Source: Cyanophora paradoxa CCMP329 (lineage: Eukaryota; Plantae; Glaucophyta). Taken from it: a DNA stretch of 64,000 nt. Below the pieces are notes generated by a model, which worked only from the letters and a program-made list of their open reading frames with translations, had not been told where the DNA came from and ran no database searches. Positions 364 through 56,881 of this stretch are shown in pieces. Position numbers and translations under genes: made by a program. The first letter of the stretch is position 1, and each line of letters opens with the position of its first letter. Where the stretch lies: NCBI GenBank assembly GCA_004431415.1, contig QPMI01000483.1:186001-250000 (forward strand). The letters run 5' to 3'.

Positions 364-2024
364 ATGGGTCAGCATCTCCCGTTGCTCCTCGGCACGGCGA
401 TGCTCTTGTGCGCTTCCCTCTCTGCCGCGTACGCGTTGCCTGACCCGCCCAGGCCCTGGAATGCCATTATGGGATCGTTCGACTACCTTCAAACTGCGTT
501 CCCGGCTCGAAGACCTGCGTTCGACACCAGCTGGCTATACCAGGCGAGCACGCTAGGAGGGGCTCTGCTCTGCTTCAATCCGACCATCTCATTGGCGTGG
601 AGCGTGCGGTCTCGCATCGCGGTTCCGCTCGCGGCCTTCGTGCGCGGGCTGGCACGCGAGCGCGAAAGGTGCCTGCAGCTGAGAGTCTCATCGCGCAGGT
701 GGCCCTATTCATCGCCGTCCCAGCCCTGCCGCCGGGCTCGGACAGCTCGTATACCGCACTGCTCGTTCTTGTTGCCGCCTCTGGAGTCGCCACGGCTGTT
801 CTGCAGCAGTCCCTGCTGGCCTGGGCGGCCTCCGCGGGCCGCGAGCAGCTGGTGGCCGTCGTTCAGGGAAACGCGGTGTCGGGGATCTTGATCTGCGGGG
901 CTCGCGTGGCCTCGAAGCTCGCCCTCCCCGCTTCGCTGGATGGTCTCCGCCAATCTGTGGTCGTCTACTTCGCGCTGGCGGTGAGCATGTCTCGTATATT
1001 CTAAACCACGGCTAACCTGCCGCGCAGGCGGGGTTCTCTTGCCTGTGCCTGTGGGCCTTCCTGCGGGCTGCGCCTGGCGAGCAGCCCGTGGCGCACGTGC
1101 ACGCAGAGGAGGAGTCCACGCTTCTCGAAAAGGCCCCGCCGCCCACCACAGACCGTGTGTCCCAGCACCCCATTAGCCAGTGAGCCATAAGTTGCTTCTT
1201 GCGGCTAACGGTGCCCAGGCTCTCTCTCGGAGATCGCGTGGATCGTGCGGTATCCCTTGCTCAGCACGTTCTCGACTTTTCTCGTATCACTCGCCCTTTT
1301 CCCTGCGTTTGCACTCGCCGCCCCCTGCCCAAATGTGAGCTTTGCTGTGAGGCAGTCCACTTTCCACTTTCAAAGCTCTCGGATGAACCTGTGGTCCTGC
1401 TTCTGTGCATGCAGGGCATCTCGCCCGACTGGAATGTCCTTCTCATCATCAGTGATTTCTGCATCTTCGACTTGATCGGTCGCTTACTTGCAAAGCGGTC
1501 CTGTTTTCCCCATTACTGCCTCTTGCCGATATTGATCTTTGGGACAGGCTTCAGCCACCGGGACTGCTGAGCCTTGCCCTCTTCACCCTTGCCCGCTCCC
1601 TCCTCGCGCTGCCCCTTCTATTGGCCGCCTCCCCCGCCGGCCGCGCCCTCCTACCGTCAGTCCTCGAACCTACATCCTCTCCGCTGACTGTGCCCCTCCT
1701 AGTCGCCATCGTCGCCTCCACCTCTGGCTTTGCCATCAGTGCGCGCACGCGTGTGGAACTTGCATGCTGCTGCGTTCCAAGTCCTACTGTTTTTGCTTAC
1801 ATCTGCGTTGTGTGAGCAGCAGCAGCCCTGGCACAGGCGCCACCCCTTGTCAGCCTGTCTGAGCACAGTTGTGCCTCCACCCTGATGGTACGTTTCCCCA
1901 GTCTGCTTAAAATCCAACAGTTCTCTGACCTTGCAATTGGCAGGCTGTGGCACTCAACGGGGGGCTCACGGCTGGGGCCCTCGTCGCCAACGCCCTCCAG
2001 CCCCTTGTTCTTGACTCCGCGTGA
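364..2024 (+). CDS. Equilibrative nucleoside transporter (ENT/SLC29 family), multi-exon
   Basis: Spliced peptide has ENT motifs LLGTAMLL/PWNAIMGSFDY, QGNAVSG, TFLVSLALFPA, FCIFDLIGR, STSGF, GLTAGA; many hydrophobic helices; stop TGA 2022-2024. Confidence 0.85.
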
Positions 2025-2330
2025 TCAATTAATATTGCAATTGGCCGAGTGGATCTAAACCTCTCAGTTGCAAACCACGCATGTGCGTGTATCTGTGCAC
2101 ACCATCGCACATATCGGCCGGAATTATACGAACTCGATCGATATCGAATTTTCTTAAGCTTCGAATTCGAGTTCGAATGCGCCGAAATGTTGAACACAAC
2201 CGCTGCACCGAAAATATAGCTATAGCTACGACCGCGCCTTCCCGCCGTTCGGTCACACATACCGAAACTGTAGACAGCAGTTTGGTTTCAACGCCGCGTG
2301 GACTGTGGCCGGGCACAGTTGGCTTTCAGG

Positions 2331-4627
2331 ATGGATCGACTGCACGGGTTTCAGTTTTCACCGCCCGAGACAGATCCGTCCGACCTTCTAGCCTCGTTCC
2401 CGGCGTACGCACCTGACGAGCCCGGGTTCGGAAGCGGCTACGCGGGCCTGCCTTTGGAGAGTCTTGGCAGCGTATACAGCCAGCAGGGATTTCCCGGTGG
2501 CATTGGCGTCAATCCCCTCGGCGTTCCCAATGTCGTTGCTATGCCCACAAGCCCCGACGGGGCGGACCATCGGGCGGGTGCAGCTCCTACTGCTATCTCG
2601 CTCAGCGCCCGATTTCTCGAGAACTACGCGTACGGCATCTCGAAGAAGCACAACAACAGCGCGGTTTTCCTCGTTCAGGGCGGCGAGAGCCCGCATCGCG
2701 TGACCCTGGAACTCTCCCTATCCAGCCCGGTCCGTGGCTCTCGCACCACGCATCACTCACATCCGCTGAGCTCGCATACAGCCATCCTTTCCTGTCCGTG
2801 TGTCACTCCGCCTGGCATACTCGGACTCCGACCAGCCTGTGCTCCCGGAGACGGTCAGACGGCTCGCTGCGTCGGAACGCGACGCCAGTATGACAGTGCC
2901 TCGGCTGCAGGTGTCCGGCGTGACATTGCCACCGCTCACCGAATGGGAGACTGGCGCCTTGCCTTCCGTCATCTTTGAGCCGAACAGCAATCTGGTCAGG
3001 CGCCTCATCTTGGTACCAGAACAGCACCCACTTGTTGAGTAACTTGCTTTTGCTTACTGACACGTTCAAACAGAAATTCAACAGATTGAGTCGCAAGAAC
3101 TTGTTCTCGCTTATTGTCGAGTCTGGTAAATACTCTCCTGTATTCTGTCTGAATTAAATGTTGTTGATGCAGCACAGACTGCAAGACCTTTCAGTGCAAA
3201 CTGGGCCCCCTGATGGCCGGATCAAGATTTGATCAGAGCTTAGACACGTTCAGGTTCGTAGTATCACATCCGAGCAGAGCAATGCGATAGCTGACCTTGA
3301 GCAGCGACATCTGGGATGGAGCATTACAGGGTGCGAAAGGCCGGGAGGAAGGGAAGGCTTCCAGACGCATCCGGGAAGCTCGAGAAGCTCGACTTGCAGG
3401 ACAGGCGGGAGCAGCCTCCAGTATCTCATCGAGCTCTTCAGCAGGGCCCGGCCAACAAGCCCGGGAGCGAAAGCAGCCACGGCCAGTTCAGCACGTAGTG
3501 AAGCAAGAAGCCCCCATTGACATAGGCAGCCTTCAGATCATCAACAGCCCAGAGACCGCCCAGCCAACATTCGCAGATGACCAGGACGTAGTAGAGCCTC
3601 CTGAGCCACTTGAACCCGGTTTGAAGGCGATCGTTGAGCGTGCTCATTTCGCACGACTGGAGGGCAAGCTGTTGACAGCACTGCAAGAAGCGAACATGCT
3701 TCTGAAGCCACCCCAATGGATACCTTTTGCCACAGCCCTTTCTCAGATGTTACGTGAGGTGCGCCTTGTTGAGTTCGTGCACATTTCGCCGGTTGTGCTG
3801 ACTGTTACCATTCGAAGCCAAATTTGAAGCGCATAGTCATGATTGCCCCTGGCATATTGAGCTTTTGGGAGCAGTGGAAGTTTCTGTTCCGGACTCAGGG
3901 GCCCATCCTTTCGGCGGAGGTCGTACACGGTGTGCTGGTGGAGCTGTTCGCTGGAGTTCTGACTGTCAGCTTGTCCGACATCGACCTCGTCGCTTCTGTT
4001 GCCATTGGAGAAGGCAAGCGGCCAAGCCTGGGGTGGGCATCGAAGGGCTTCACGGAGGAGGAATGCCAGTTGATCGCCTTCTGGAGCTACCCTGCATCGC
4101 TTTGCTTACGTGTGCTTCTATGAGAGTCTGGGGCATGTATAGCCTCTGACGTGAAGCCCGCAGGATCTGCTCAAACATTGGTAGAGAAGAAGGATCCCAA
4201 GTGGTTCTATCCTTTGTTACCATCTGAGGCAGCACAGCGGCGATTGACTGGATCTCCTTCTGGTGCATTCTTGTTTCTCCCAAGCAGTTTTTTCATGTTC
4301 TTAATTGCGCCCAGGGAGCTTTCTTCTTCGCCTGTCCTCGCAGGCGTTTCCAGATGAGGGAGCTGGCCTTGTCACTGCAAGCTTTGTGAAGAACGATGGT
4401 GTGTCCTCCAGAGCCAATTTTTCTTCCCCATACTGACTGCATTTGCAGGAGTGTACCACCAGCGCATACCAGTGTTGTCAACATCACCGAACCTTTTTGC
4501 CTCGGCTGACGAGATCATCACCTACATTAAAAGTCATCCAAACAGGTTCAAAACGGTTTGGATGTCACCAGAAGAACTCGCCACCAAGCGAGTGCGTGGA
4601 ACTGAGGGAAAGTATTTCAACGATTAG
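2331..4627 (+). CDS. STAT-like transcription factor: putative beta-sandwich (CudA/STAT-type) DNA-binding domain, STAT-type linker, SH2 domain, C-terminal Tyr tail
   Basis: After removing GT-AG introns (e.g. 4263-4314, 4400-4448) the C-terminus reads KWFYPLLPSEAAQRRLTGSPSGSFLLRLSSQAFPDEGAGLVTASFVKNDGVYHQRIPVLSTSPNLFASADEIITYIKSHP...GTEGKYFND*, an SH2 pattern with the FLLR arginine. The preceding helical region resembles the linker of plant STAT-like SH2 proteins (from memory). Confidence 0.75.
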
Positions 4628-4699
4628 CCCAGCTGATAGCCGTACTAGTACTGCAGTATTTAGTCTAGCAAGGATAGGATTGTATCCCATACGCACTTT

Positions 4700-4760
4700 T
4701 TGGGGAAGGGTAAAACACTTCCCCTGTCCCTCTCCTTTGGTCACAGTACCCTGGGCCCTG
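4700..4760 (+). mobile_element. Isolated 5' end of a Helentron-like element
   Basis: TTTTT|GGGGAAGGGTAAAACACTTCCCCTGTCCCTCTCCTT, near-identical to the 5' end at 5303 and containing the GGGGAAG/CTTCCCC hairpin; no confident matching 3' end. Confidence 0.5.
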
Positions 4761-5300
4761 GACACTTCTCCCGCTCATGATCAGCGGCTCCCCGAAGGGG
4801 TACTCCCCCCGCTCAGTGGCTCCCAAAGGATGCGAGTGGCTCAGTTGAGTCTGATCGCTTGATCATTGAGTGAACTCCTGAGTCCCGGCGGGGCGGGGTC
4901 ACTGGGTCCAGCCCCTACTACTACTACTTCAATTTCTTGGAACCGTGAACTTCAAAACCTTGGACTTGGCAGTCGAATTTCCGACTCGCGATCGGCAAGG
5001 TTCAAATGCGCCCGGCGGCCAAACTGTCTCAGAGTCTGAGGCGCCCGGCGCAAATGCGCCGCGGGCCGCCCCGGCGGTACATTTGAGCTTTCAGGCTTTT
5101 AAATCATTGAATTTGCAAAATTGACAATAACTTCCGAAGTTCGCTATCGTATTTCGGGGGGTCTAACTGGCTGAACGGCTTAACTTAGTAAGCTTGGCCG
5201 TGCCGCAGTGCCCTGAATGGTGAAATGAATTCCGAAGTTCATGCAATTGATGATTAATCTTGAAACTTTTTGAAATACTTGCCAAGTTGAAACCTTATAA

Positions 5301-6725
5301 TTGGGGAAGGGAAAATCACTTCCCCTGTCCCTCTCCTTAGGGCCCAACCCTACCCCAAATCCTGTTTCCCCGACCTCCTCAAAACCCGGGCCGCGCGGTA
5401 TATCCTGAAAGCACATCCCAAGGGGACCCCGAAACCATGTCGCCCGGTCCCGTCCGACCAAAGGGTGATCCAGGAACGGGCACCAACTCCCGGGACAAAA
5501 ACGGGTCCAGCGACGCATAGGGAGCAGATATACGAGCCAAACCAGTTCGAGGTCGTTGCACGCATCATGAACAACATTCCGTACAGCAGGAGCAAGGCCG
5601 GATGCGAGCGCGGTTGCGTGGGAGGACGCCGCGCGCCCTAGCCAATCACATTAGAGAGTCAGTTAACTTACCCTGAGGAAAGTCTTTTCGCGGACCCCCC
5701 CGGCCGCTTTCTCCCTCCCGCCCTGGCCAGCGCTTTCTCCTAAGCTTCCCGACAGCCCGGCCGGCCGCGGCGCTCTCTGTCACGCGCGCCTCTCGCGCGC
5801 GCGGCAGTCTGCTGTAGCTAGCCGCGCCATGAACGCCACAGCCGCTCCAACCGCACGCACCCCGGTCGCAAGCCGGCCACAAGCCGGTCGCACTAGCTTG
5901 CGCCGTGGGGTCGCATCAGGTTTGCCCGCGGCGCGCCAGCTGCGCAGGAGCCCGAGGCCATGTCCGCGCCGCGCAATGCCCCGGGCCCGCGCGCGGCGCC
6001 GGCCGCGCGCCGGGCGCCCGGCCGGCGCGGCAGTACGAGCTCGCGCGCGACGGCCGCGGGGCAATTGCAAGCGCATGCGCAGGTTGCGAACGTCTAGATC
6101 TGGCCATGGCCAGCAGCGCGCCTCGAGCTCCGATCCGATCGATCCGATCATGCGCACTCGCAACACACGCACATGCCTACCTTCATGCACGGTGCGCTCG
6201 CAGCTACGCAGCGCCCTTGGTACCAGTCTTTGCCCGCTCAGTTGCATTATCTCGCCCTAGGCCCTCCGGTCCATTCGGCGTGTCCCGCAATCGCGCGCGT
6301 GACGTCGACGGCCTCGCGCTCGCGCGTGACGGGGCATGCGCAAGCGCAGGAGCAGACATGTACATCCACAAGGTTTGCGAGCCATCCCGGCCCACTGCGC
6401 CGCGTCCAACCTCTTCTAGCCTCCTCTTTCGAATTTTATATTTAGCCTCGAAAACAGCTCGCCTGCAGCTGGCGCCGGCCTGGCGTCGGATGGCCGCGGC
6501 TACCGCCTTCAAGGCTTCTGGACCGGAGCCTCGGAGCGCTAGCTCTGCTTTTCTTCCATTTGAATGGACGCAGCGGTCCTTCAAGTTTGCTCCTTTTCCT
6601 GCTCTCTAGATCTCCGGATTCAAGCCATCGCCCCAAATTCGCGAGTGACTTTCCCTTCCCCGGACCCCGCAGCGGCGTGCACGAGCACGACCCCTTCCGA
6701 GCGCGCGCCGCAGCGGGCCCTTTTT
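5301..6725 (+). mobile_element. Non-autonomous Helentron/Helitron2 (HINE/DINE-like) element
   Basis: 5' TT|GGGGAAGGGAAAATCACT (5303-5320) with self-hairpin; 3' subterminal inverted copy AGTGACTTTCCCTTCCCC (6644-6661, 17/18 match); then a GC-rich stem-loop (6662-6720) and TTTTT; no TSD. Confidence 0.7.
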
Positions 6726-7322
6726 AACAGACCGTCGGACCGTCGGACCTGGATTGATAAGCCTGGCCCAGCGGCAGTGACTCATGATCAGTGACTGGTG
6801 TGAGGCTCTGCACCCTTCTCGAAGCCCTTAAAGCCGCTCAACGGCTGAGCCTTCAAGGCTTAAACTTTTGAAAGCTTTCAGAGCCTGAGAGTCCAACGGT
6901 CTCACTGAGTCACTGAGTCACAGACTGAGAGTCTAACGCCGGGGCGCATGCGGAGCCTGGCAGGGTTTACGTTTATGTTCTCGCGCGATCGGACTCCGGG
7001 AAATGCCATGATGTCTTCAATGCAAGGCTTGAAGCCATGAAGCCACTGGGGGGGCCAGTCACTGAGTGAAGGTTGCATGAGCAGTCCATGGGGCTTCGCC
7101 GAGTCGAATCATGAATCCAAGGCGTACTGTATACGTAGCTATATAGCTACCGTAGTACTGCAACTGGTGATCGTATGTCACTTATTCATATCCATTCCAC
7201 GATGAATTGCAAATTCGAAAGCCTTGAAGCCTTGAAATTTCAAGAAGACGCAATAATGTACTTCGGTATACGTAATGGGTCAACCCGACTCGGCGAACCC
7301 GGCGTCGTTCTGGGGTACTAGT

Positions 7323-10300
7323 CTACACAAAAAGCTCGGAGGCGGCCTCCTCGATGGCCCGTGGGCTTGCCTCCTCGCCGTGCAGAGAGACCAGCCGCGC
7401 CGGTGACGCCGCCGCCCGCCCCGCCGCCCCTCCCCGCGCCGAGCTTGAAACCGAGCCGGCCCGGGGCGGGGTCGAACGACGCGAGCCGGCCGCCGCCGCC
7501 GCCGCCGCCGCCGCCTTGGCGCGGGAGGCGCCGCGGAGGAACTGGGCGGGGGCGTGAGCGGGCGCGGCGCAGGGGCGGAGGCGGCGCGCACGGCGAGGAG
7601 CTCGGCGAGGACGAGCGGCTTCAGCAGCGCCCCGGAGCCAGCCGGCAGCGCGGGCCCGTCGCCGCCCCGACCGCCGGCCCGCGGAGCAGGGCAACGGCGC
7701 GGGGCGGCTCGCGCGGGCCGCCGCCTCCGCCAGGCGCGTGCTCGCGGGGCCCTCAACGATGTCCCGGGGCGGGGGCGCCAGCGGGAGGGCCCCGGGCGGG
7801 GCGGGCGGGGCGGGCCCGACAGCGGCGCCCTCCGGGAGGCTCTCGTCGACGAGGAGGGCGTCGTAGGGGCCCGCCCCGCCCACCCCAGCAGCGCCCGCGC
7901 CCGCGCCGCCGACCCCGCCCACGTGCACGCGCACCCTGCGCCGCGCGAGTCAGCGCCGCCGCCGCGGGCCGTCGGGTGGGGAGCGGGGCGCGCCGGCGTC
8001 GTCGCAGTAGGCGTCCACCGCGTCGGCGAGCGGCCCGCTGCGAGGGGCGCGTCAAGCGCGCCTGGCGGCGGCGCTGGGACGGGGCGGGGCGCACCAGTCC
8101 GTGGCGACAAGGACGCGGACGGGGGGAAGATAGCGAGGGGCCGCACCGCGCGGGCCCCGGGGCGAGGCGCACGCCGAGGGCGGGCCCGGGCGGCGGGCCC
8201 GCGGGGGCGGGCCGCGCCCCGACGAGGAGCGGGAGGAGCAGCGCCAGGTGGGGCCCCCAGCGCCGGCGTCAGCCCCGCCCGAGGCGAGGCTGCCCTCGCG
8301 GCGCAGGAAGGGCGTCAGGGGCCCGAGGCGCTCTGCGGGAGGGCGGGAGGGCGGCGCAGGGGCGGGGGCGGGGCGGAGGAGAGGGTGGCCTGGGCGCCGC
8401 GGCCGGGCCCGTCGGAGGCGAGGCGGAGGGTGGCGCCGGCGGAGCGGAGGAGGCGGCGGGCGAGGGCGAGGGAGAGGCCGGAGACGTGCCCGTCGGGGCC
8501 TCCCACAGGAGCGCGTCGTCGTCGGGCCCGTTCAGGCGCGCCACCTCGCGCGCCCCGAGGCCGGCCCCCGTGTCCGCGACCGCCACCTCCACGCGCGGCG
8601 CCGGGCCGGCCCCCGGCTCGCACCAGATGGAGACCGAGCCGGCCGCCGTGAAGCGCACCGCGTTCTCCAGCAGCGCGTCCAGCGCCCGCCGCAGCGCCCC
8701 GGGCTCCGCCGCCACCCGCCCGGGGCACGCCGGCGAGACGTAGCAGACGAGCTCGAGGCCGCGGGCGGCGGCGGCGGGGCGTGGGCGCGGGCGGCGGCCT
8801 CGAGGGCGTCGCGGAGGGGCACTCGGCGGGGCCGCGGGGCGACTCGAGGCCGGCCTCGAGGCGCGCGTAGACGGCCGCCTCGTCGGGGGCGGCCGGCGGG
8901 AGGAGCGGGGCGAGGGCGCGGGCCTTGGCGCGCGCCGAGGCCCGCAGCGCGGCGAGCGCGGCCGCCTCGGCGGTCTCGCGCGAGACGCAGAGGAGGCCGG
9001 TGCGGGCCCCCGAGCCGGCGCAGCGCGCGGCCGCCTGCACGGTGAGCGCCGCCTCGGCGCCCGCCGCCGTCGCGAAGGCGAGCGGCACGTCCGCCGCCTC
9101 CTCCGCATCGCCCCGCGCCACGAGCCTGCGCCCCGCGCCGTCAGGAGGCGCCCTCCGCGCGGCGCCGGCGCCGGCGCGGCGGGGCGCACGCGTCGAAGAG
9201 GTCGGCCCAGGGGCCGGCGGCGGCGGGGCGAGGAGGGAGTGGAGCGGGGCGCCGAGGGCCTCCTCCGCGGGGCGCCCCGTGAGGGCCTCCATGGCGGGGC
9301 TCCACTCGGTGAGGCAGGCGGCGGCGTCGACGGCGAAGGCGGGGGAGGCGGAGCAGGCGAGGGCGTGCTCGAGGTCGCGCTGCAGCTGCGCGGCGCGCCC
9401 CTCCGCCGCGTCCACCGTCGTCAGCAGCGCCCGCCGCTCCGAGATGTCCCGCACGCAGACCACCAGCTGCGGCGCCCCCGAGAGCAGCGTGTGCCCCACC
9501 GAGAACTCCGCCGGGAAGAGGCGCGCCCCGTCCTGCGCGGCGGCGTGGGCGGGCGGGGCGGGGGAGCTGCGAGGGGGCGGCGGGGCGCGGACGCGGCGGC
9601 AGGCGAGGAACTCGGAGGCGCGGCCGGTGCGCTCGAGGACCTCGGCGGCGAGGAAGGCCTCGAAGACGGCGCGGTCCGCGGGGGCGATCAGCTCGGGGCC
9701 CAGCTGCGCCCCCTGCACCGCCTCGGGGCGCCCGATGCCGAAGAGCTCGAGGGCGCGCGAGTTGAGCATGGAGACGCGCCCGCGCTCGTCGCACACGATG
9801 ATCGCGTCCAGCATCCCGCTGATGATCGCCAGCAGCGACCGCATCTTCACCAGCCTGCCCCGCCCCCTCCCGTCAGGCTCTGCGGGGCGGGGCGGGGCGG
9901 GGCGGGCGGGGCGGGCGGGGCGAGGGCGCACTCGCGGGAGAAGGTGTCGAGCTCGACGAGGAAGGACCCCAGGAGCGGCGCCCGCCGCGGCGTCGCCTGC
10001 GCGCGCGCCCCGCCCCAGTCGCACGGAGCCCCAGAAGGCGAGGCGAAAGGGGGCGTACCTGGGGGAGGGTGAGGCCGGGCCCGCGGCCGGCGAGGATGTC
10101 GGCGACGCGGCGGGAGAGGCGGCGGACGCTGGAGGCGGGGCGGAGGCAGCGGAAGTTGTCGGAGGCGAGGCGGAGGGAGGTGACGGCGGCGACCTCGACG
10201 TGGAAGGCCCGCAGCTGCCGCCCGATCTCCCACGAGACCGCCCCCATCAGCGCCACCACGCACAGCATCGCCCCCGCCGCGATCCCCGCCGTCGTCCGCG

Positions 10301-12579
10301 CCGCCGTCGCCACCCGCCCGTGCACCGCCGCGTCCTCCAGCGCCACCCCCACCAGCAGCCGCAGCGGCCGCCCGCGCGCCTGGCCCGGCCCCGCCCCCAC
10401 GCTCGTCGCCAGGTAGCGCCCCGAGTAGGAGCGGCCGCCGCCGTCGTCGAAGCGCACGGCCGAGGCCGCCGCCTCGGACGCCGCCTCGGAGGCTGTGGCG
10501 CCGCCCGAGGAGGTGGGGTCCCACGCGGGGCCGCCCCAGGCGCCCGGCGGGAGGGCCGCCACAAAGGCCCGCAGCAGGGGGTCCCCCAGCTGCCCCGCGG
10601 AGACCATCTGCTCCCGCCCGCTGCCGAACTGCGCCTGCAGGAAGGCCTCCGGGCGGTGGTATGCCACCACGAACGTCTGCGCAGGGGCGGCGCGGGGCCG
10701 CGTTGGAGGGGTGCGCGGCGGGGCGAGCGCGAACCGCAGACCTCGTTGCGCTCGTCGCGGGCGAGGACGGCGGCGAAGCCCGAGGTGCCTTCGTGGCCCC
10801 CCACCCCGAGGTAGGCAAGGTAGGACGACAGCTGCAGGGCCGCCGGCCCGCGCGCGTCAGCACGGCACGAAAGAGAGCGGCGCGGGCCCAGCACCGGCCC
10901 CGGCGCACCAGGCGGAGGTCGAGGGTCGCGGCGACGACGCCCATAAGAGGCGCGCCCCCCGAGCCGTCAAGCGGGTCTCCCCCTCCAAAGAGCGGCTGCG
11001 GGGGCGTCGGAGGGGGCTACCGGGGCGAGGCTGGCGCTCGGCTTCGGGGGCGGACCAGCGAGAACGAGATTCCTGCGCTGCCCGCGGTGAGTGGGTACAC
11101 ATCCGTCCAGGATCCGGCCCGCGCCGAGACGCCGGCCCGCCAGAAGGGCCTCTGCGGCGCGGGCGCGGGGTCGCGCGGGGCGGGCGCTGGCAGGACGGGG
11201 CCGGGGGGCGGCGCGCCTCGCGGGGGTCGTAGGTGTCGGAGTATACGCGGGAGAGTTCGATGGGGCGCCGGTCCGCCGCGTAGTAGTAGCTCCACCTGCC
11301 GGGCACGCCGGCGCGCCGGGTGAGCCGCCGCGACGGGCGGGCGGGCGGGCGGGCGGGCGTGGCGCGGCACCGGTCGAGGGCGCCGGTGGTGGCATTGACG
11401 GCCGTCTCGGAGATCGTGTACGGCTCCAGCGGCGCCGGCTGCGCGTGCGGCCCCGTCGGCTCGGGCGGCCCGTGCGGGTGGCGAGGGGCCGGCCGCACGC
11501 CGGAGGGGCGGAAGATCGAGCCGGAGCTCTCGCGGCGGAGGATGAAGCCGGCGCCGCTGCCGGCAGTGAGCGAGGCGGGGGCGGGGCGCCGGGGCGCGGC
11601 GCGCGCACTCGGGGAGGATGAAGGCGATGGAGCGGAACCGGAAGGCGGATGCCATGGCCCGCGCCGCCCCAATCGCTGCGCGCGCGCCCCGGCCCCGTCG
11701 GCGGCCCCGGAGGGAGAGTGGGGGCCAGAGCCCGCTCGCACCGCGCGGCAGGTCGGCCGCGGAGACTGCGTGGGGCGCTACGGGGCCGCTGCCGGGGGGC
11801 GACGGGTGAGCGGGGGGCCCAGCGCGGGCGGGGAGGGCGTGGCGCTGCTCCGTGGCGAGGCCGCGGGCCATCTGCGCGGAGGCGAGGCTCCCCGAGTTGA
11901 AGAGCAGGAGCACGTTCTCCTGCACCCGCCGCCCCTGCGCCCCGCTCGTTCCCGGTACGGTACGCGGCACGCACGGACGCGGCGCCAGCAGCGGCGGCGG
12001 CGGCGGGGGGCCCGGGGAGCGCACGACGTGGAAGAGGATCTGGTCGCGCAGCTCGGTGGAATTCTTGTTCGCCGCGTCGCTGCTGAGCAGACCGATCGAC
12101 GTGCACGCCGCCGCCAGGATCAGGAAGATGAACGGAAGCACGACGCTCCGCAGCCCGATGCGGCAGAGGCGCTGCCGCGGCGCCGGCGGCGGCTCGAAGA
12201 TCGCCGCAGGGCGGGCGCACGTCCCCGCGAGGCTCGCCCTGCGGGGGCGCGACCGCTCCGCCCGCTCCGCCTTGAGCGAGTTACCGCGAACCGTGGTTAG
12301 CGAAGGCGGCTCTAGGGCGTCCCGGCCGAGCGACGGCGCTCGTCGGGAAGACGATCGCGGTTGCCCTAGGCTGTCCTCGTCCAAGTGCAATGCAAGATTC
12401 AATACAGGCGGGCCGTGCGGATGCATCTTCGGGAGGTCCGCGAAGTCCGCTGGAGCCGCAGGCCGCGGCGCCACCGTTTCCGGCAGCTCATCCGCTGGCG
12501 CATGCAAAGGACAGAAAGCCGGCGATGCGAGGTATCTTTCGCTGCGACCGCTGCTGCGGCCGCGTGCGGAGTCGGTCAT
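7323..12579 (-). CDS. Membrane hybrid histidine-kinase-like sensor: TM-dCache-TM-PAS-PAS-(degenerate HisKA)-HATPase-receiver
   Basis: TM VVLPFIFLILAAACTSIGLL; Cache motifs YDPR.RPFW and WTDVY; TM AGIAAGAMLCVVALMG; PAS MLDAIIVCDERGRVSMLNSRALELFG...FPAEFSV...VCVRDISER; N-box LDALLENAVRFT; G1 VADTGAG; G2 SGLSLALARRLL; receiver YDALLVDESLP...LLKPL; a few apparent 1-nt frameshifts in G/C runs. Confidence 0.75.
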
Positions 12580-15795: not shown

Positions 15796-18700
15796 ATGAT
15801 TCGCCGGACGACCAAGGTCAACCTGGTGCCTCAAGCTGCGTTCTCAACGGAGCGCGAGCGCCAGGAGCGTCGGAAACGGCAGCTGGAGGAGAGGAAGGAC
15901 CTTGTGAAGTTCATACACTTCAATGTGCTCATGCCGTGCATCGACTACGCCGTCGTGCGTGGTGAGAAGGTCTTGGAGGCCCGCCGCAGGCAGCAGGAGT
16001 ATCTTTTTGCGCCGCACGCTGCGCGGAGCGATCCTCGTTTGAATTTGCGCTAGCCTACAACCTTGATTAACGAGCAGATTCGAGCGGCGGCCCGTCCCGA
16101 AGCACATCTTCACGGCGACGCTCATCCACCGGATAGGGGTCGCGGAGCTCATCGGGGACGCCCTTGCTTCCTTCCCGATCATAGCCCGCGGCGTGTTCGC
16201 CGACGACCGCTCCCCGCTGCTTTTCGAGGTCACGAACGCGCGGCTGCTCGGGCCAGTGGGGGACGCTCGCCGCGCCAACGTGCACTCCGTGGCCGCGAAC
16301 CGGAGGGACCTGCGCCTGTGCGGGACCCGACGCTCCGCCCTCTCCTCTCCCCTCAGACAGAGCGCAGGTATGTGCTGTACGCGGACGGCTGGCTGGAGTC
16401 GTACGACGTGGCGCTCCAGCGACGGATCTGGGGCGTCCAGGCGCTCGCTCTGAAGGACCAGCAGCTCCCGCGGCACCGGTGCGCACGGCACTGCGCGCAG
16501 AGCTCCCCGGGCCGAGGCGGGCGCAGGGTGCTGGAGGCGGACGAGGCGACGGGCCTCATCGTCGTGAACACCTGCTTCATGGACGAGCACGTGCGCCCGG
16601 CCGGGGCCCGTCGGCGCCGGCGCCGATCTCACATAACCTCGGTGCGGCAGATCCGCTTCTACGAGCCGGTGGCGGGCCGCATGGCGTACCGCGTCGAACC
16701 GAAGCTCACACTTCCGCCGCCGCCCGCGGCGACGGCCACACCGCCAAGCACCGGCCGCGTTCGCCCAGCGGAAGCCAAGGCCAACCGCTACGCCTCCGCG
16801 ATCCAGGTCCGTGCCTCAAGCCTAGGAAACGTTATCCGAGCGGGCGCCGACGGGGGCGCAGCGGATGTTCCGTAAGCACCTGGCGCGGCGGGAGCTGGCG
16901 CAGGCAGACCCCTCGCTCCCCATCTCCATCACCAAGAAGCTCGTCATCCGCTCCGTCATGTGCGCCGGAGCCGCCCTGCCGTACCGCTCCCCGCTCCGGC
17001 CTCGTCTGACGGGGCGGGGCGCAGCTACGTGCGGCGGCTGGACATCCTGATCTGCACGGCGGCGGGGACCTCGCTGATCCTCTGCTTCAACCCCGTGTCG
17101 GGCTCCCTCGTGCTCGCGTGCGAGGGCCACACGGGCGGGACGCCGGTCATCCGCTGGGAGGAGCGCATGCGGTGCCTGCTGAGCGGGGGCGGGGGCGCGG
17201 CGGGGGCGGACGAGGGCCCGGACCGCGGCCTGGCGGACGCGACGGTGCGGGTGTGGGACATCGAGGGGGAGCTGCGGAAGCCGCTGGCGGCGGGGCAGCG
17301 GCGGACGACGCCGCGGTGCAAGGCGGCGCGCGTGCTCCAGGGCCACACGCGCGCCGTCACCGACGTCGCCTACCTCCCCCGGAGCGCCCTCCTCGTCTCC
17401 GCCTCCCTCGACCGCTCCATCCGCTTCTGGGACCCCATGGCCCGGCCCCACGCCCTCACCATTCCCGACGCCCCCCCGTGCGCCCCGCCGGCCCTCCAGC
17501 CATCTCCGCAGCTCTGATCCCCGCCCCAGGCACGTGCGCGTCTGGCCGGGCTACTACGAGCCCCTCAAGATGGAGTGGACGAGCAGCAACCAGGCGCGCC
17601 CGCCCCGCCGCGCCCGCCCCGCGCCGCGCCCGCCGATCGCCTCCGCAGCCCTTCAGCGAGTGCCTGAAGCTCGCCACGGCGCACGTCGCCCACGTGCGCA
17701 CCGCCGGGCCCTCCCTTTCCTTCTCGCAGCGCCGCTGAGGCGCGCGCAGCGGCTGGAGGCGGTGGCGTGCCCGCTGACGGCGGGCGAGGGGGACCCGTCG
17801 GCCCTCTTCGAGGTGCTGCTCGCGTCGACGCGGGACCCCGTGCTGGGCGCCAAGAAGAGCGCCGTGTGCGCCTGGATCGTGTCGCGCAACGAGGTGACCG
17901 TGGAGGCGCACCGCTTCGACGACCCGGCGCCGCAGGAGGTGCTGGACGAGTGCGAGGAGTTCGCGCTGCGCGACTGGCGCAAGGCGCTCGTGCGCTACTC
18001 GGGCGTCGCGACGCGGGCCCTGCAGGACGCCGGGGAGGCGGACCTCCGCCGCGAGGCCCGGCGCCAGCTCCTCGACGCGGCCTTCCGCAGCGCCTGGCTC
18101 GACCGCGCCGGCCCGCACGCCCCGCTCCGGCCCGACGCCCTCGAGCGCATCTTCTCGCTCGCGCAGGAGGACGCGGCGGGGGCCTACCGGCGCGCCCCCG
18201 AGCCGCACCTCTCGGCGGACGAGGCGTACCGCCTGCTCGTGGACCACGGCCGCTTCGCGGGCCGCAACCTCGTCTCCCCCAGCGCCTTCTGCCGCTTCCT
18301 CCACGCCCTCCTCGCCGCCGAGAGCCGCGCCGCCGCCGCCGCCGCCGCCGAGATCGCCGCCCGCCAGGGCCGCCTCCCCGCCAACGCCCCCGCCCGCTAC
18401 AAGACCTCCCTCATCCCCGCCACCGGTGCGGCGCAGCCGCTCTGCAACCCTCGCGCGGCGCCCCTCGCGAACCGAACCGCCGGGGCGCGCGCAGCGGAGG
18501 CCTCGGGGGCGCAGAAGACGTCGCTGGAGGCGGCGGTGGCCTCCCTCGGGATGTCCCTCGACGTCGCGCGCTGGGCGGCGGTGGCGAACGCGGCGGACCC
18601 CGTGCAGGAGCTCCGCCACGCCCTCCGCTCCCTCCGCCAGCACGCTGCCCTGGCCGCCGAGGCGGCGCGGCGGGACCGCGGGGCGCGCCTCCTTGCCGGC

Positions 18701-21700
18701 GTCGGGCAGATGTCGCTCTGGGGCCGCACCCTCACGGCCCTCGGGCAGCAGCTCGGCCTCCTCGCCGCCGAGCTGCAGAACCGCCTGCACGCCATCGCCG
18801 ACGCCAACCTCCGCTCCTTCATGGCCCCCGCTGCGCGCCTCGCCGAGGGGCCCCTCGGGCCGCCCCCCGAGGCCCTGCGCCGCGAGATGGTCACCAACTT
18901 CGTCTACGACAAGCGCCGGCTCGTGGCGCCGCAGCGCAGCGAGCCCGGCCGCGTCATCTGCGAGGGCGTCGACGAGGACGCCGACGAGGCACCCGCCCTG
19001 CGCGCCCCCGCGCCCCGCCGGTGCGCGCTCACGCGGCGGCCGCAGATCGTGGCGGTGACGATCCTGCCGGACCCGTACCTGGGGGCCCTCCAGCGCGACG
19101 GCCGCCGCCGCGTCTACTACGTCGATTTCGAGATGGAGGCGCGCCCCTCCCTCCTTTCCTTCCGGCCTGCCCCTCGCGGCTGAGCGGGCGCAGGCGTGGC
19201 GGCGCCTCGCGGGGGACCCCCGCTTCCTGCGCGTCTTCGGGTGGCGGGACGAGCGGGTGGACCCGCGCGAGCGCTGGCTCGCCCCCGCGCAGACGCCGGT
19301 GTGGCAGCGGCTCGTTGTCTCGGAGCGGCTGGAGGGGTGGCCCTCGCTGCGCTCGCTGCTGGGCCTGCACGGCTACCTGGGCGCCGAGGAGCTCCAGGGC
19401 GTCCTCCGCCTCTGGGCCCGCGAGGCGGCGCAGGCCCTCGCCTCCCTCCGCGCCTGCCGCGTCGCCGCCCGCAACTTCGCCCCGGAGGCCCTCGCCGTCT
19501 CCCCCGACGGCACCCGGCTCAAGGCCCGCCCCGCCCCGCCTGCGTGACTTCGCGGCGCCCGTCTCACGCCTCTCCGTCAGGTGGTCTCCCTCGCCGAGAT
19601 GGGCCTGCTTGACGACCGCGGCTGTGCGCCGTGCCCCCCGCTGCCCCCGCCTGGCCCCCCTCACGCCCCGCAGTCATCTTCGCGGCGGCGGACCGGGACG
19701 CCTCCTACCTGGACCCCGCCAACCCCTACCTGCCCCCGGAGCACTTCGTCAGCGTGCGTGCTCCCGCCCCGCCCTTCCTCTGCAGCCCCGGCGGCCGCCG
19801 ACGGGCGCCGCAGCGGCAGGGGGCGCAGACGGTGGCGTACGACGTCTGGTGCTTCGGCTGCCTCCTCTTCGAGATGGTCTTCGGGCGCCCGCCCCCGGCC
19901 TTCGGGCCCCTCCTCGCCAAGTCGGCCCCGCCCTCCTTCTCTGTCCTCCGCGCCCCGCTCACCCGCTGCAGGTTCAACGCCGCCAACGGGCTGCCGCCGC
20001 CCAGCCCGTACCACCCCGACATCCACCCCGCCTTCGCGTACGACCCGTTCGCCGACCTGCCGCGCGCCCGCCCCGGCACGGGCGTCCGCGTCGGGCCGGC
20101 GGGGGAGGCGCTCCTGCAGCCGCCGCCGCCCGGGGCGCGGGCGAGCGTGCGGGACATGGCGCCCTGGCTGGCGGTGGAGGCGCCGAGCCGGGCGCCGCCG
20201 GCGGAGTGGGGCATGGACGAGCGGGAGCGGAACCAGCCGCACGGCCCCGCCTTCTTCTCCCTCCTCGACCTCATCCGCGCCTGCCTCGCCGTCGACCCCA
20301 AGCGCCGCCCGCCCCCCGACCGCATCCTCGGCTGCCCCTACCTCCGCCTCGACACGACCGAGGCCCTCGCCGCCCGCACCGCCGCGGCACGCTACATGGC
20401 TTCCCGCAACCCCGCCCAGGCCGCCCTCGAGGCGCGCCGCCCCGCGCGACGCCGCCGCCCCGGCCCGCGGCGCCGCGCGCTGACGGCCGGGCAGGTGCTG
20501 GGGCGGGTGCTGGACGACCTCGACGCCGAGGCGGCCGCCTCGCCCGACGGCCGCGTCAACCCGACACCTTCGCCCGCGCCGGTGCCCCGCGGCTTCTGTC
20601 CCGGGCCCTCCAGCCCCGACTGAGGCGCCGGCGCGGCAGTGGGGGCGATGGCCGACCTGCTGACGGGCGCGGCGCCGGCCTCGGCGGACGGCTTCGGCCC
20701 CGGCGAGCGGGAGCAGTCCCGCGTCCTCCGCGCCGTCTTCGAGGGGTACCGCTCCCTCCCCGCTCGCGCGGCGCCGGCGCCGGCTGAGGGGCGGGCGGCA
20801 GGCGCATGCTGGACCGGCTGGTGGTCACGTTCCTGCGGCAGTGCGGCCCGGCCGCCTCCGCCGCCCCGCTCGCCCTCCTCGCCGGCAGCGCCCGCAAGCG
20901 CCGCCCCCCGCCGTCTCCACCGACTGGGGCTGGGGCCTCCGCCCCCGCGGCTACCCGGACCCCCACGACCTGGTGCACCCGCGGCCGCGGCGGCGGGCGG
21001 GGCGGGTGGCGCCCCCCGTGGACGAGGCGCGGCGGGGCTGGCTGCCCCCCGAGATGGACGCGGCGGCGGCCTACATGCTCGACTGGCTCCTCACCCTCTA
21101 CGACGACTTGTGCGACGGGCGCGCCGCCCCTCGCCGGCCCGCTCCGGCGCGCCCTGAGGCCGCGGGCGCAGGCTGCGGGAGATGTCGTCGCCGTGCGCGC
21201 CCTTCGTGGAGCCCGTCCTCCACAACCTCCTCCGCCTCTACTTCGGCCAGGTCCCCCGCCCCCCCCCCCGAGCCTCTCCCCCCGCCCGGGCCGACCCGCC
21301 CCGCAGGAGCACCTCTTCGAGGCGGCGACGAGCGACGCCAAGGCCGGCGACCCGCTCGCCGCCTACGCCCCGGGGCTCGCCCCGCCCCCGCGCCCCGCCC
21401 CGGGGGCCGCCCCGCCTCCCGCCAAGCCCTCCCTCGTCTTCGCGGCTGAGCCGGTGGACCGGTGGAGCATCGGGCTGCACCACGCGGTGGCCCCCATCGT
21501 GGAGGAGCTCATCACGGCAGCCGGCGGCGGCGGCCCGCCCTACGCCGCCGTCCGCGACTTCCTCCGCCCCGCCGCCGCCGGCTCGCCCTCGGCCCGCGTC
21601 TACGTCCCGACCGCGCCGCCGGGGATCGCGGTGCGGGTGCCGCGGGCGGGGAGCTTCTGGCGGGAGGTGGCGGAGGCGGGGGAGAGCATGGCGCGGGCCT

Positions 21701-24700
21701 TCCGCTTCGGGCAGCCGCGCACGCGCCTCTCGGGGCTCGACCACCTGCGCGCCGTCGCGACCGTCGCCGGCGGGAGCGGCCCGGGCGGGGCCCCCCACCC
21801 CTACGGCTACGACGAGGAGCTCGAGGGGCGGGCGGAGGTCTGCGTGGCGCTGCGCCTGGTGGAGCGGCTGGCGCCCCTGCTCGACGACCCCGACGCCGAG
21901 ATCCGCGCCGCCGTCCTCCGCATCTTCGTCGAGGTCGCCAAGGTGCCCCCTCCCTCCCCCCCCCTCCCCCCCCCCCCCCCCCCCCCGCCTTCCCGCCCCT
22001 CCTCGCCTCCCCCTCCTCACGGCTCTGCAGCGCGCGGAGGGGCCGGGGCGCGGCCGCAGGCGGCCGGCTCGCGGCTGGTGACGGCGTTGTGCACAGGCCC
22101 CGCGGTGGCGGCGGTGGTGCGGCGCTTCCGGGCGCAGGACGAGCAGCCGCGGGCGCAGCGGCTCGCCCTCGAGATCCTCGCCCTCCTCGCCCGCGGCGAC
22201 GAGCGTGCGCCCCGGCCCCTCCCTCCCGCCCCCCGCCCCTTGCCTCACGCGCCGGCGCAGCCGCGGTCGAGGCGCTGCGCTCGGCGGACGCCTTCGCGGT
22301 GCTCGCCCGCTCGACCGCCCCGGGCCGCGTGGACGGCCGGTGGTCCGCCTCGGCGGCGGCGGCGGCGACGCGGGGCAAGGACGGGAGCGACCTCTGCTCG
22401 GCGGTGAAGGCGGCGCTGAAGGGGCTGGTGGAGGCGGGGAGCCCCGCGTGCCTGGAGGCCCTTGAGCGCTCTCAGCGGCTGCGAGCGCTGCTGGAGGCGG
22501 CCGGGGTCGACCTGCGGGGCGCCCGCTCCCTCCCCGACATCGCCGCTTCCCTCGAGGGCCTCGCCGCCGCCATCGCCCGCCGCGACCGCGCCCTGCCCCG
22601 CGGCGAGCCCCTGCAGCGCGCCGCCGGCCTCCTCGGGCGGCTCGAGGCGCTCGTCGTGCGGCGCGCCTACGTGCGGGCCGCCACGGGGGCCGACCTCGCC
22701 TCGGACCCCGCGCCCTCGCCGCCTTCCGCGCCGCCGTGGCCCTCTTCGAGGCGTGCTGGCCGGGAGCGGGGACGGGCCCCGCGCCGACCCCGCCGCCGTC
22801 GCCGTCGCCGAGGCCGCCCTCCGCCTCTTCGCCGCCGCCCTCGCCGCCGCCTTCCCCGCCCTCCCCCACCCGCTCCCCGCCGCCTTCGCTCCCGCCCCTA
22901 CGTCGCCGCCGCCCCGCCCCCGTACCCCCGCTCCCCTCGCCGAGCGCGCCGCTGCCGGAGCCGGAGCCGGCGCTGGCTTCGCTGCTGGTGGCGTGCGGGG
23001 CCGTGGCGGCGGCGGCGCGCTGCCTGGACGACCCCTTCTGGGAGGCCGGCCCGGAGCCGGCGGGGCAGGATCGGGGCATCGCCCCGCGCCCCGCCGCCGG
23101 CGCCGTGCCGCCCTCGCGCGCCCTCGCCCTCGCCAACCACCCGCTCCTCCCCGCCCGCGCCGCCGTCCAGACCCTCCTCCTCCGCTGCCTCACCGCCGCG
23201 CCGGGGCCACCCGCCCCGCGCCGGCCCCGACGCTGCCGCCGGCGCAGGGCGGCCCCTCGGCGACGCCGGCGGCGGCGGGCCAGGCGGCGCCGGCGGCGGA
23301 GCTGCTGGGGGCGCTGGCGGAGGCGGAGTTCGGGCGGCGGCTGGCGGACCACGTGCACCAGCAGGTGGAGCTGCTGCGCTCGCTGGCCCGCGTCGGGGGC
23401 CTCGAGGCGCACGTGCCCCGCTACTTCCCCGACGAGGCCGCCTTCCGCGCCCACGCCACCTCCGCCCTCCTCGCCCTCCCTCCGAGCCGCCCCCGCCGCC
23501 CCCGCCCCGGCCGCGCGGCACCCGGCGGGGAGCCTGGCTGCGGCGCGGGCGGAGGCGAGCGGGGCGGGGCGGCGGCTGCAGCAGCAGCTGCTGGCGGCCG
23601 GCTTCGTGGAGGCCGTCCTCCTCGACTACCTCCCCGACACCACCTTCGTCGGTCCGCCCACGCCTCCTCCCCCGCCCCCCGCGCCCCTCAGCGCCGCACG
23701 CAGACGTCGGCCACCGCCTCGTCCCGCGCTCCTTCATCCCCTTCGACCGCACCTTCCTCATCCGCGAGGAGGCAACGCGCCTCGCCGCCGCCCTCGCCGC
23801 CGCCCGCCCCACCGCCCCCGACGTCTTCCACGCCCTTCTCGTCTCCGTGCGCCCTCCCGCCCGCCCGCCCGCCCGCCTGCCCCGTCGAGCCGGGGCTGAC
23901 GCGTGCGGGCGAGCAGCTGCGGAAGCACGGGGTGGTGGCGTCGGAGGTGGACGTGCTGCGGGAGGCGGAGCGGCGGCCGCTGCAGGCGACGGCCCCGGCC
24001 TTCCTCGCGGCGCTGCTGCCGGCCTCGCACTACGACCCCGCGATGCACGGCCTCCTTGTCGAGGCCGGCGTCGGGCTCGACGTCGAGCGCGCGCACGCCG
24101 CCGCCCTCGAGGCCCGCCTCCGCGCCGCCCCGCGGGAGGACCCCGCCGAGGACCCCCTCGTCGCCGCCTGCCAGGCCTTCTTCGCCGTCCGCCCCCCGCC
24201 CCGCCCCTCCTTGCGCTCCCCCCTGACCTCGCCCTCGCAGGCCGTCCGGGCCCACGAGCGGCGCACGAAGCGGCCCTCTCCTCTGCTCTCCGACCAGACC
24301 CGCCGCGAGTGCGCGCGCCGCGCTCCAGGCGCCGCCTTCCGCCTAACCTAACCCACGGGCCGGCCGCAGCCCGGCGGCGGGGACGAGGCCGGCGTCGCGT
24401 CGGCGCTCATCTCGGACCACCTGCGCGCGGGGTCCGCCCCGCAGGGCCCCGCCGGCCTCGCCCATCTCACGGCCGCCACAGGCTGATCGAGGCGGAGAAG
24501 GCGGGGGTGGCGCCGGCGCCGGGGCCCGCGGCGACGGACCCCGGCGAGAGCGACGCGGTGGCCGCCGAGGGCCCGCCCCGCACCCTCCACGACCCCGAGC
24601 GCCGCGCGCCCGCCTCCCGGCCCCAGCGCAAGCCCCAGGAGCCCGTCCGGTCCGGCCCACGCCGCTTTTCTCGCGCCGGGCCCCGCTGAGCCGCCCCGCA

Positions 24701-56200: not shown

Positions 56201-56881
56201 ACAGGTGCCGGCCCCGTTGCACGAACTGCAGCGCGCAAGCGCCGCGTGAGGCGGGGAGGGCGCGGGGCGCGCGGGGCGCGCGGGGCGGGGCAGGGGCGGG
56301 GGGCGGGCGGACGAGGACGATGTGACAGACGTGGAAGAGCGCGAGCATGCAGCGCGCGTGGCCCGCCTCCTGCTTCAGTAGCCACGCGTGCATCTCCTGC
56401 CGCGCCGCGTCGCGCCACGCCCCGCAAGCGCGGGGCGGGGCGGGGCGGGGCGCGTGGGCGGAGCGCACCGAGGGACCCACGCCAGGCGGCGGCGAGGCGT
56501 AGGCGTCGACGAGGGAGGAGCCGTCGCCAAGCCATGCGAGGCACATGTACAGGATGCGGTGCACCGGGTCGAACAGCGGCTGGAGCGACCACTGCACAGC
56601 AAGTCGGACCCCTAAAAGTGCGGCCGGCGCTCGGCGGGCGGACCTTTTCTCCTGGAGCCGAATGCTTGATCTCCTGCGCGAATGTGCTGGCTCAGCGGCC
56701 GCGTTCGGGCGTGCGTGCTTGTTTGGGTCGCGCGCTGTACCGTGAGCGGCTTGAGCGTGAGCCCGCGCAGGAACCCGGCTTTGCTCTCCGTCGCCGATCC
56801 GATCACGCCAATCACCGCCGGTCGCACGTTCGCGAACTGTGCGGCCAGGTGGGCGAGCGCCTGCGCCGCGCTCGGATCCAT
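53212..56881 (-). CDS. SMG8: Nonsense-mediated decay factor SMG8
   Basis: VIGVIG, LALFHVCHIVL, PG.C.PLLAFVF, LFTV, AKEAYLKDLPPLY...EH, EC...W..GRQRC.A.SLSGRPC, HASG....ACACGR, GLEYECDAGHRF, AQL.RL, LVLRLP; some apparent homopolymer frameshifts. Confidence 0.85.

Follow-up and report, generated by a model that had tools for sequence, protein, structure and literature searches.

A ten-exon gene of the glaucophyte Cyanophora paradoxa combines a divergent SH2 domain with a C-terminal tyrosine in a predicted phosphotyrosine-reader protein

Introduction

Does a glaucophyte alga encode an SH2 protein, and if so, is it a transcription factor of the STAT type? The question is raised by a locus at positions 2331–4627 of a 64,000-nucleotide stretch of the Cyanophora paradoxa genome (contig QPMI01000483.1; hereafter, the window), for which a prediction made from the sequence alone had proposed a hidden STAT-like SH2 transcription factor with a tyrosine in its C-terminal tail. 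In the plant lineage, SH2-based reading of phosphotyrosine (pTyr) is thought to be nearly absent, the only examples credited to it being SPT6L and a small number of orphan STAT-like proteins whose pTyr function is doubtful (PMC8331091). In Arabidopsis, the proteins SHA and SHB are listed as plant STAT-like SH2 proteins, or STATL (Gao et al., 2004, as cited in PMC8331091). Here, we report the transcript and exon structure of the Cyanophora gene, the assignment of its C-terminal domain, and a comparison of the complete protein with plant STATL, animal and Dictyostelium STATs, and SH2 proteins of the Src type.

Gene structure and transcription

In each of three RNA-like sequencing runs (X1, X3, and X8), which come from three different studies, a single assembled contig of 2002–2080 nt covers approximately 2209–4728 on the forward strand when aligned to the region 1800–5300. 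The three independent assemblies agree closely in their ends, with contig starts at 2209–2219 and contig ends at 4708–4729, and the X1 contig is terminated by sequencing adapter both at 2209 and at 4728. Nine GT..AG stretches are exactly absent from every one of these contigs, whereas the DNA run X15 covers the region contiguously, unspliced, and with zero joints. The RNA label of the runs is in itself a guess, but the nine exact GT-AG excisions, set against the unspliced DNA contig, make their RNA nature clear. Approximately 0.65 of the region's words, about the share of the exons, occur in fourteen RNA-like runs from nine studies, and some runs of 2012 contain 0.98–0.99 of them. All nine introns are short (50–61 nt), and more than one-half of them (5/9) carry the pentanucleotide CTGAC 10–20 nt before the AG.

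The joined exons form an open frame of 1809 nt, i.e., 602 codons followed by a TAG stop, with the coding region extending over 2331–4627 on the forward strand. The start codon at 2331 is the first ATG of the transcript, the 122-nt 5' leader being free of ATG triplets. The locus is best explained as a single native gene of the glaucophyte C. paradoxa, with 10 exons and constitutive transcription. Its exons, introns, and protein regions are listed in Table 1.

The original prediction of a hidden multi-exon gene with a continuous frame produced by GT-AG splicing is borne out by the spliced contigs from three studies and the 602-codon frame, with two corrections in detail. Of the two introns proposed within the SH2 region, 4263–4314 is exact, while the other, given as 4400–4448, was placed one base off, the actual intron being 4399–4448. 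In the beta-rich part, an in-frame 57-nt intron (2854–2910) had been overlooked, and its excision removes 19 codons. Alternative splicing that leads to a stop near 4357, envisaged at the time as evidence to the contrary, is used in none of the assemblies (0/3).

Table 1. Positions of the transcript, its exons and introns, and the regions of the encoded protein (window positions; all on the forward strand)
Feature	Position	Strand	Residues	Basis and remarks
Transcript	2209–4728 (approximate ends)	+		Three RNA-like assemblies
Introns 1–5	2730–2781, 2854–2910, 3013–3073, 3126–3177, 3254–3304	+		Gaps in RNA contigs
Introns 6–9	3759–3817, 4110–4163, 4263–4314, 4399–4448	+		Gaps in RNA contigs
Coding exon 1	2331–2729	+	1–133	RNA contigs; no Pfam match
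Coding exon 2	2782–2853	+	134–157	RNA contigs
Coding exon 3	2911–3012	+	158–191	RNA contigs; preceding intron spliced likewise in public model g14570
Coding exon 4	3074–3125	+	192–209	RNA contigs; last codon split
Coding exon 5	3178–3253	+	209–234	RNA contigs, g14570; end of beta-rich domain
Coding exon 6	3305–3758	+	234–385	Contiguous in RNA contigs; no Pfam match
Coding exon 7	3818–4109	+	386–483	RNA contigs; helical region before SH2
Coding exon 8	4164–4262	+	483–516	RNA contigs; SH2 start, W496 at 4202–4204
Coding exon 9	4315–4398	+	516–544	RNA contigs; SH2 strands with GSFLLRLS, R521 at 4329–4331
Coding exon 10	4449–4627	+	544–602 and TAG	RNA contigs; remainder of SH2 and tail
H547 (exon 10)	4457–4459	+	547	
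SH2 end (exon 10)	4538–4540	+	~574 (Pro)	From alignment with PLC-gamma1 C-SH2
Y599 (exon 10)	4613–4615	+	599	
Head			1–90	Gly/Pro/Ala/Ser-rich, acidic, low complexity
Beta-rich domain			~90–242	Fold not assigned from sequence
Spacer			~243–338	Low complexity, Ala/Gln/Ser/Gly/Arg/Glu-rich; basic clusters KASRRIREAR and RERKQPR
Helical region			~339–490	No relatives in exhaustive HMMER search with linker exon
SH2 domain			~495–574	W496, R521, S523, H547, helix FASADEIITY
Tail			575–602	28 residues; sole tyrosine Y599

Public annotation

The public annotation wrongly cuts this gene into two halves. The model tig00020848_g14571.t1 (P0001; EukProt EP00741_Cyanophora_paradoxa_P015100; hereafter, g14571) comprises 221 residues that correspond to residues 382–602 of the complete protein with 100% identity. 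The model tig00020848_g14570.t1 (P0005; g14570) has 197 residues, the first 172 of which correspond to residues 71–242, again with 100% identity, and then diverges via a 91-nt GT-AG intron (3331–3421) that shifts the frame and leads to a stop. This joint is present in none of the three RNA assemblies, all of which contain exon 6 (3305–3758) unbroken, and both half-models map to one and the same RNA contig.

The linker exon (97 residues) led us to g14571 in an exhaustive HMMER search, and exon 1 led us to g14570 in a word-based one. As annotated, the gene appears as two unrelated-looking halves, and domain surveys would miss its architecture. The searches described below were conducted piecewise; taken together, g14570, g14571, and exons 1 and 6 cover all 602 residues.

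The SH2 domain

The assignment of the C-terminus as a real and complete, albeit divergent, SH2 domain that extends over three exons is well supported by profile and sequence comparisons. The Pfam SH2 profile (PF00017) matches g14571 with E = 4.1e-4 (whole library) and 20.8 bits, slightly short of the curated cut-off of 21; the alignment relates residues 115–175 of this half-model to profile positions 1–57 of 77. At E<=10, no other Pfam family was found in g14571, and the SPT6-type SH2 family was not matched. Single exon pieces yielded no Pfam match, as expected for a domain split over three exons. In a phmmer search of the PDB with g14571, SH2 domains account for almost all of the weak matches at E<=10 (15/16), including those of HSH2D (E 0.07), PLC-gamma1, GRAP2, p85-beta, Fyn, and PTK6, whereas exon 10 alone or exon 7 alone produced none or chance matches. 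Considered together, the Pfam E-value of 4.1e-4 and the predominance of SH2 domains among the PDB matches indicate that the pattern is more than chance.

The motifs noticed originally (KWF, GSFLLRLS, VYHQRI, and FASADEIITY, with the ending KYFND) are all present in the spliced protein. The alignment with the C-terminal SH2 domain of PLC-gamma1 spans the region from W496 to an SHP motif past the second helix, and within it the FLxR arginine, the betaD histidine, and the F-S-x-x-E/D-I-x-x-Y helix are in register. R521 (Arg betaB5, in GSFLLRLS) and H547 (betaD4, in VYHQRI) align to the equivalent positions of both HSH2D and PLC-gamma1, and Ser523 occupies the Ser betaB7 position of the pocket. 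The claim of a complete three-exon SH2 domain that retains the arginine of the pTyr pocket, R521, is therefore upheld. According to the PLC-gamma1 alignment, the second phosphate-binding position, alphaA2, is Ser. In most pTyr-binding SH2 domains, this position is Arg or Lys.

Comparison by the Atlas language model placed g14571 closest to a cluster of Streptophyta SH2 proteins (0.90, 190 shared features), the second-nearest cluster being STAT_linker+SH2 (0.79), and SH2 is the family common to all ten best matches. Single-sequence AlphaFold2 models of g14571 and of its residues 104–221 had pLDDT values of 36 and 42, respectively, which is unusably low. A helix-strand-strand-strand-helix succession over the SH2 part appears in both of these low-confidence models, and fold searches with them (Foldseek, VIA) returned nothing significant.

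Taken as a whole, the protein is a known reader domain, SH2, joined to orphan domains and followed by a tyrosine tail. The presence of a terminal tyrosine about 25 residues past the SH2 domain, also part of the original prediction, is confirmed in the complete frame, where Y599 lies at this distance and four residues from the C-terminus. The 602-residue protein lacks kinase, ankyrin, RING, F-box, and TIR parts.

Search for relatives

Conducted against 1.84 billion representatives, the exhaustive HMMER search that started from the linker exon revealed no relatives, the gene's own half-model g14571 being the only genuine match; three repeat proteins that also appeared were rejected, as they match by composition. 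Word-based searches with g14571 as a whole and with its residues 100–221, limited to targets of at most 387 residues, returned only g14571 itself, and a similarly word-based and length-limited search with exon 1 returned only g14570. The cluster to which g14571 belongs has one member, and an exact look-up of its encoding contigs found nothing on record. No relative was detected in a metagenome scan, and no paralog within the window by tblastn. For the helical/linker part alone, the Atlas language model offered no usable neighbor. Cyanophora SH2 or STAT proteins are not mentioned in the literature that we searched.

Comparison with STATs and other SH2 proteins

One element of the original prediction gained no support from these comparisons, namely, the STAT-type layout of a DNA-binding domain followed by a linker. 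The beta-rich domain (g14570:1–172, residues 71–242) has no Pfam match at E<=10, hence neither STAT_bind (PF02864) nor another family of DNA-binding domains, and its PDB matches are chance ones (RNA ligase 2, cyclodipeptide synthase, HA33). The helical region likewise has no Pfam match, STAT_linker (PF21354) included, and its helices appear in the low-confidence model only (pLDDT 36). More generally, none of the families STAT_int, STAT_alpha, STAT_bind, and STAT_linker was found at E<=10 in g14570, g14571, or the single exons, and no STAT chain occurs among the PDB sequence matches. A coiled-coil four-helix domain in front of the beta-rich part is absent: residues 1–90 are of low complexity, and no Pfam family matches exon 1. 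Finally, about 100 low-complexity residues are inserted between the beta-rich and the helical parts, whereas in STATs the DNA-binding domain and the linker are contiguous. A homodimer prediction for residues 100–221 of g14571 had a score of 0.01, which speaks neither for nor against binding.

The features that may still be called STAT-like, judging from sequence, are the order in which the parts follow each other, a strand of the GxFLLRxS type, and a tyrosine some 25 residues past the SH2 domain. To these can presumably be added the distance from the betaD strand to the second helix, which we take to match STAT1 rather than Src. With the STATs of animals and Dictyostelium, the Cyanophora protein shares this strand, the tyrosine 20–25 residues past SH2, helices before SH2, and a beta-rich domain further upstream. 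It differs from them in having no STAT Pfam domains, no STAT match in the PDB, no N-terminal coiled coil, and a beta domain that is set apart from the helices by about 100 disordered residues.

The best PDB sequence matches are to SH2 domains of the Src type (HSH2D, PLC-gamma1, GRAP2, Fyn, p85). The common features comprise the tryptophan, the FLxR arginine, the betaD histidine, and the F-S-x-x-E/D-I/L-x-x-Y helix. However, the E-values of these matches are only 0.07–2, the domain context is unrelated, the stretch from betaD to alphaB is shorter in Cyanophora, and alphaA2 is Ser instead of Arg.

The likeness to plant STATL is of a different kind. Both occur in Archaeplastida, both have an SH2 domain of the PF00017 type at the C-terminal end of a protein of about 600 residues, and Streptophyta SH2 proteins form the cluster nearest to g14571 in the language model. 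We also take the motif that follows the FLLR strand to resemble the corresponding motif of plant STATL. On the other hand, the linker and the N-terminal domain of the Cyanophora protein have no detectable similarity to anything, and the protein ends with a tyrosine, whereas the plant proteins show poor conservation at the STAT tyrosine sites (PMC8331091). Our best guess is that the Cyanophora protein is related to plant STATL, since its nearest Atlas cluster consists of land plants and the SH2-like domains of plants, SPT6L aside, are found only in STAT-like proteins.

Proposed function and alternative explanations

The most likely reading, to which we assign a probability of about 60%, is that the gene encodes a lineage-specific phosphotyrosine-reader protein. 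Its role in signaling of the phosphotyrosine type would be that of a reader or effector. The phosphotyrosine bound by its SH2 domain would be located on a partner or be Y599 itself, either of the same molecule or of another copy of the protein, and the tail would serve either reciprocal dimerization or self-inhibition. A glaucophyte SH2 domain with an intact pocket arginine, accompanied by a terminal tyrosine, would help to open the question of an ancestral pTyr writer–reader system in Archaeplastida to direct tests in an alga that can be cultured.

A true STAT-type transcription factor, as originally proposed, appears unlikely. According to this explanation, the beta-rich part would be a DNA-binding domain of the STAT/CudA type, the helices would be a STAT linker, and reciprocal dimers driven by pY599 would bind DNA. 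The succession of beta domain, helices, SH2, and tail tyrosine does resemble the STAT core, down to the distance of about 25 residues between SH2 and the tyrosine. The ranking of the Atlas clusters, with plant SH2 best and STAT_linker+SH2 second, speaks for this explanation, as does the restriction of plant SH2-like domains, SPT6L aside, to STAT-like proteins (PMC8331091), and the two basic clusters of the spacer could be nuclear localization signals. Against this explanation stand the absence of STAT_bind, STAT_alpha, and STAT_linker at E<=10 and of any STAT chain among the PDB matches, a helical part that has no language-model neighbor, and a layout without the coiled coil and with about 100 disordered residues inserted between beta domain and helices. 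We are equally doubtful of a minimal STAT-like switch, in which transcription would be regulated by way of a very divergent STAT/CudA-type barrel, phosphorylation of Y599, and reciprocal SH2-pTyr dimers. If this is true, phosphotyrosine-controlled transcription would reach back to the base of Archaeplastida, and a former role for the orphan plant STAT-like proteins would suggest itself.

It is rather improbable that we are dealing with a proto-SH2 domain that does not read pTyr and, like that of SPT6, binds phospho-Ser/Thr or unphosphorylated partners, the terminal tyrosine being incidental. The domain matches PF00017 and not the SPT6-type SH2 family, and GSFLLRLS with Arg betaB5, Ser betaB7, and His betaD4 constitutes a pTyr-pocket signature; these observations have to be weighed against the Ser that replaces Arg or Lys at alphaA2, the strong divergence of the domain, and the precedent of plant STAT-like proteins, whose pTyr-dependent function has been questioned and which do not conserve the STAT tyrosine (PMC8331091). 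It seems highly improbable that the gene is functionless, a young orphan or a decaying one that is transcribed but not under selection and whose SH2 domain is a mere relic. The linker exon indeed has no relatives among 1.84 billion representatives, and the GC3 of 0.62 is low in comparison with the window GC of 0.70, but the 602-codon frame is intact over nine introns, the same spliced form was assembled across many runs and studies, and the hallmark residues of SH2 are retained. A phosphotyrosine reader specific to this lineage is the explanation that we prefer.

Genomic context

The gene resides in a low-GC stretch (about 0.55 GC) that extends from about 1800 to 7400. GC content of the exons ranges from 0.40 to 0.64, with GC3 of 0.62 overall, in a window whose mean GC is 0.70. 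A foreign or viral origin, considered because of the low GC, was rejected, as the nine short introns are of the host type and similar to that of the neighboring transcript.

This neighbor is a separate transcript located upstream on the same strand (approximately 1820–2079), with a 56-nt GT-AG intron at 1887–1942. Its end, near 2079, is separated from the start of the SH2 gene by only about 130 nt. Upstream of 1820, its contigs are non-collinear with the window, probably due to another intron. At the 3' end of the SH2 transcript, the depth of the DNA run rises from about 6 to 47–157 over approximately 45 nt (4693–4740), and several short contigs stop within the same interval with unrelated flanks, so that we are probably dealing with a short dispersed repeat, of which a weak second copy (39/48 bases) is found at 5294.

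Elsewhere in the window, three blocks (7400–12000, 18000–24000, and 54000–56500) have 0.80–0.85 GC and no three-base periodicity, with about 0.8 GC at every codon position. Long ORFs abound on either strand of these blocks, and those tested had no Pfam match (0/8); the blocks resemble GC-rich repeat or non-coding DNA more than genes. Finally, an ORF at 28226–29548 on the reverse strand clearly matches ATP-grasp_5 (E = 1e-18) within residues 1–71 and probably represents one exon of an ATP-grasp enzyme gene.
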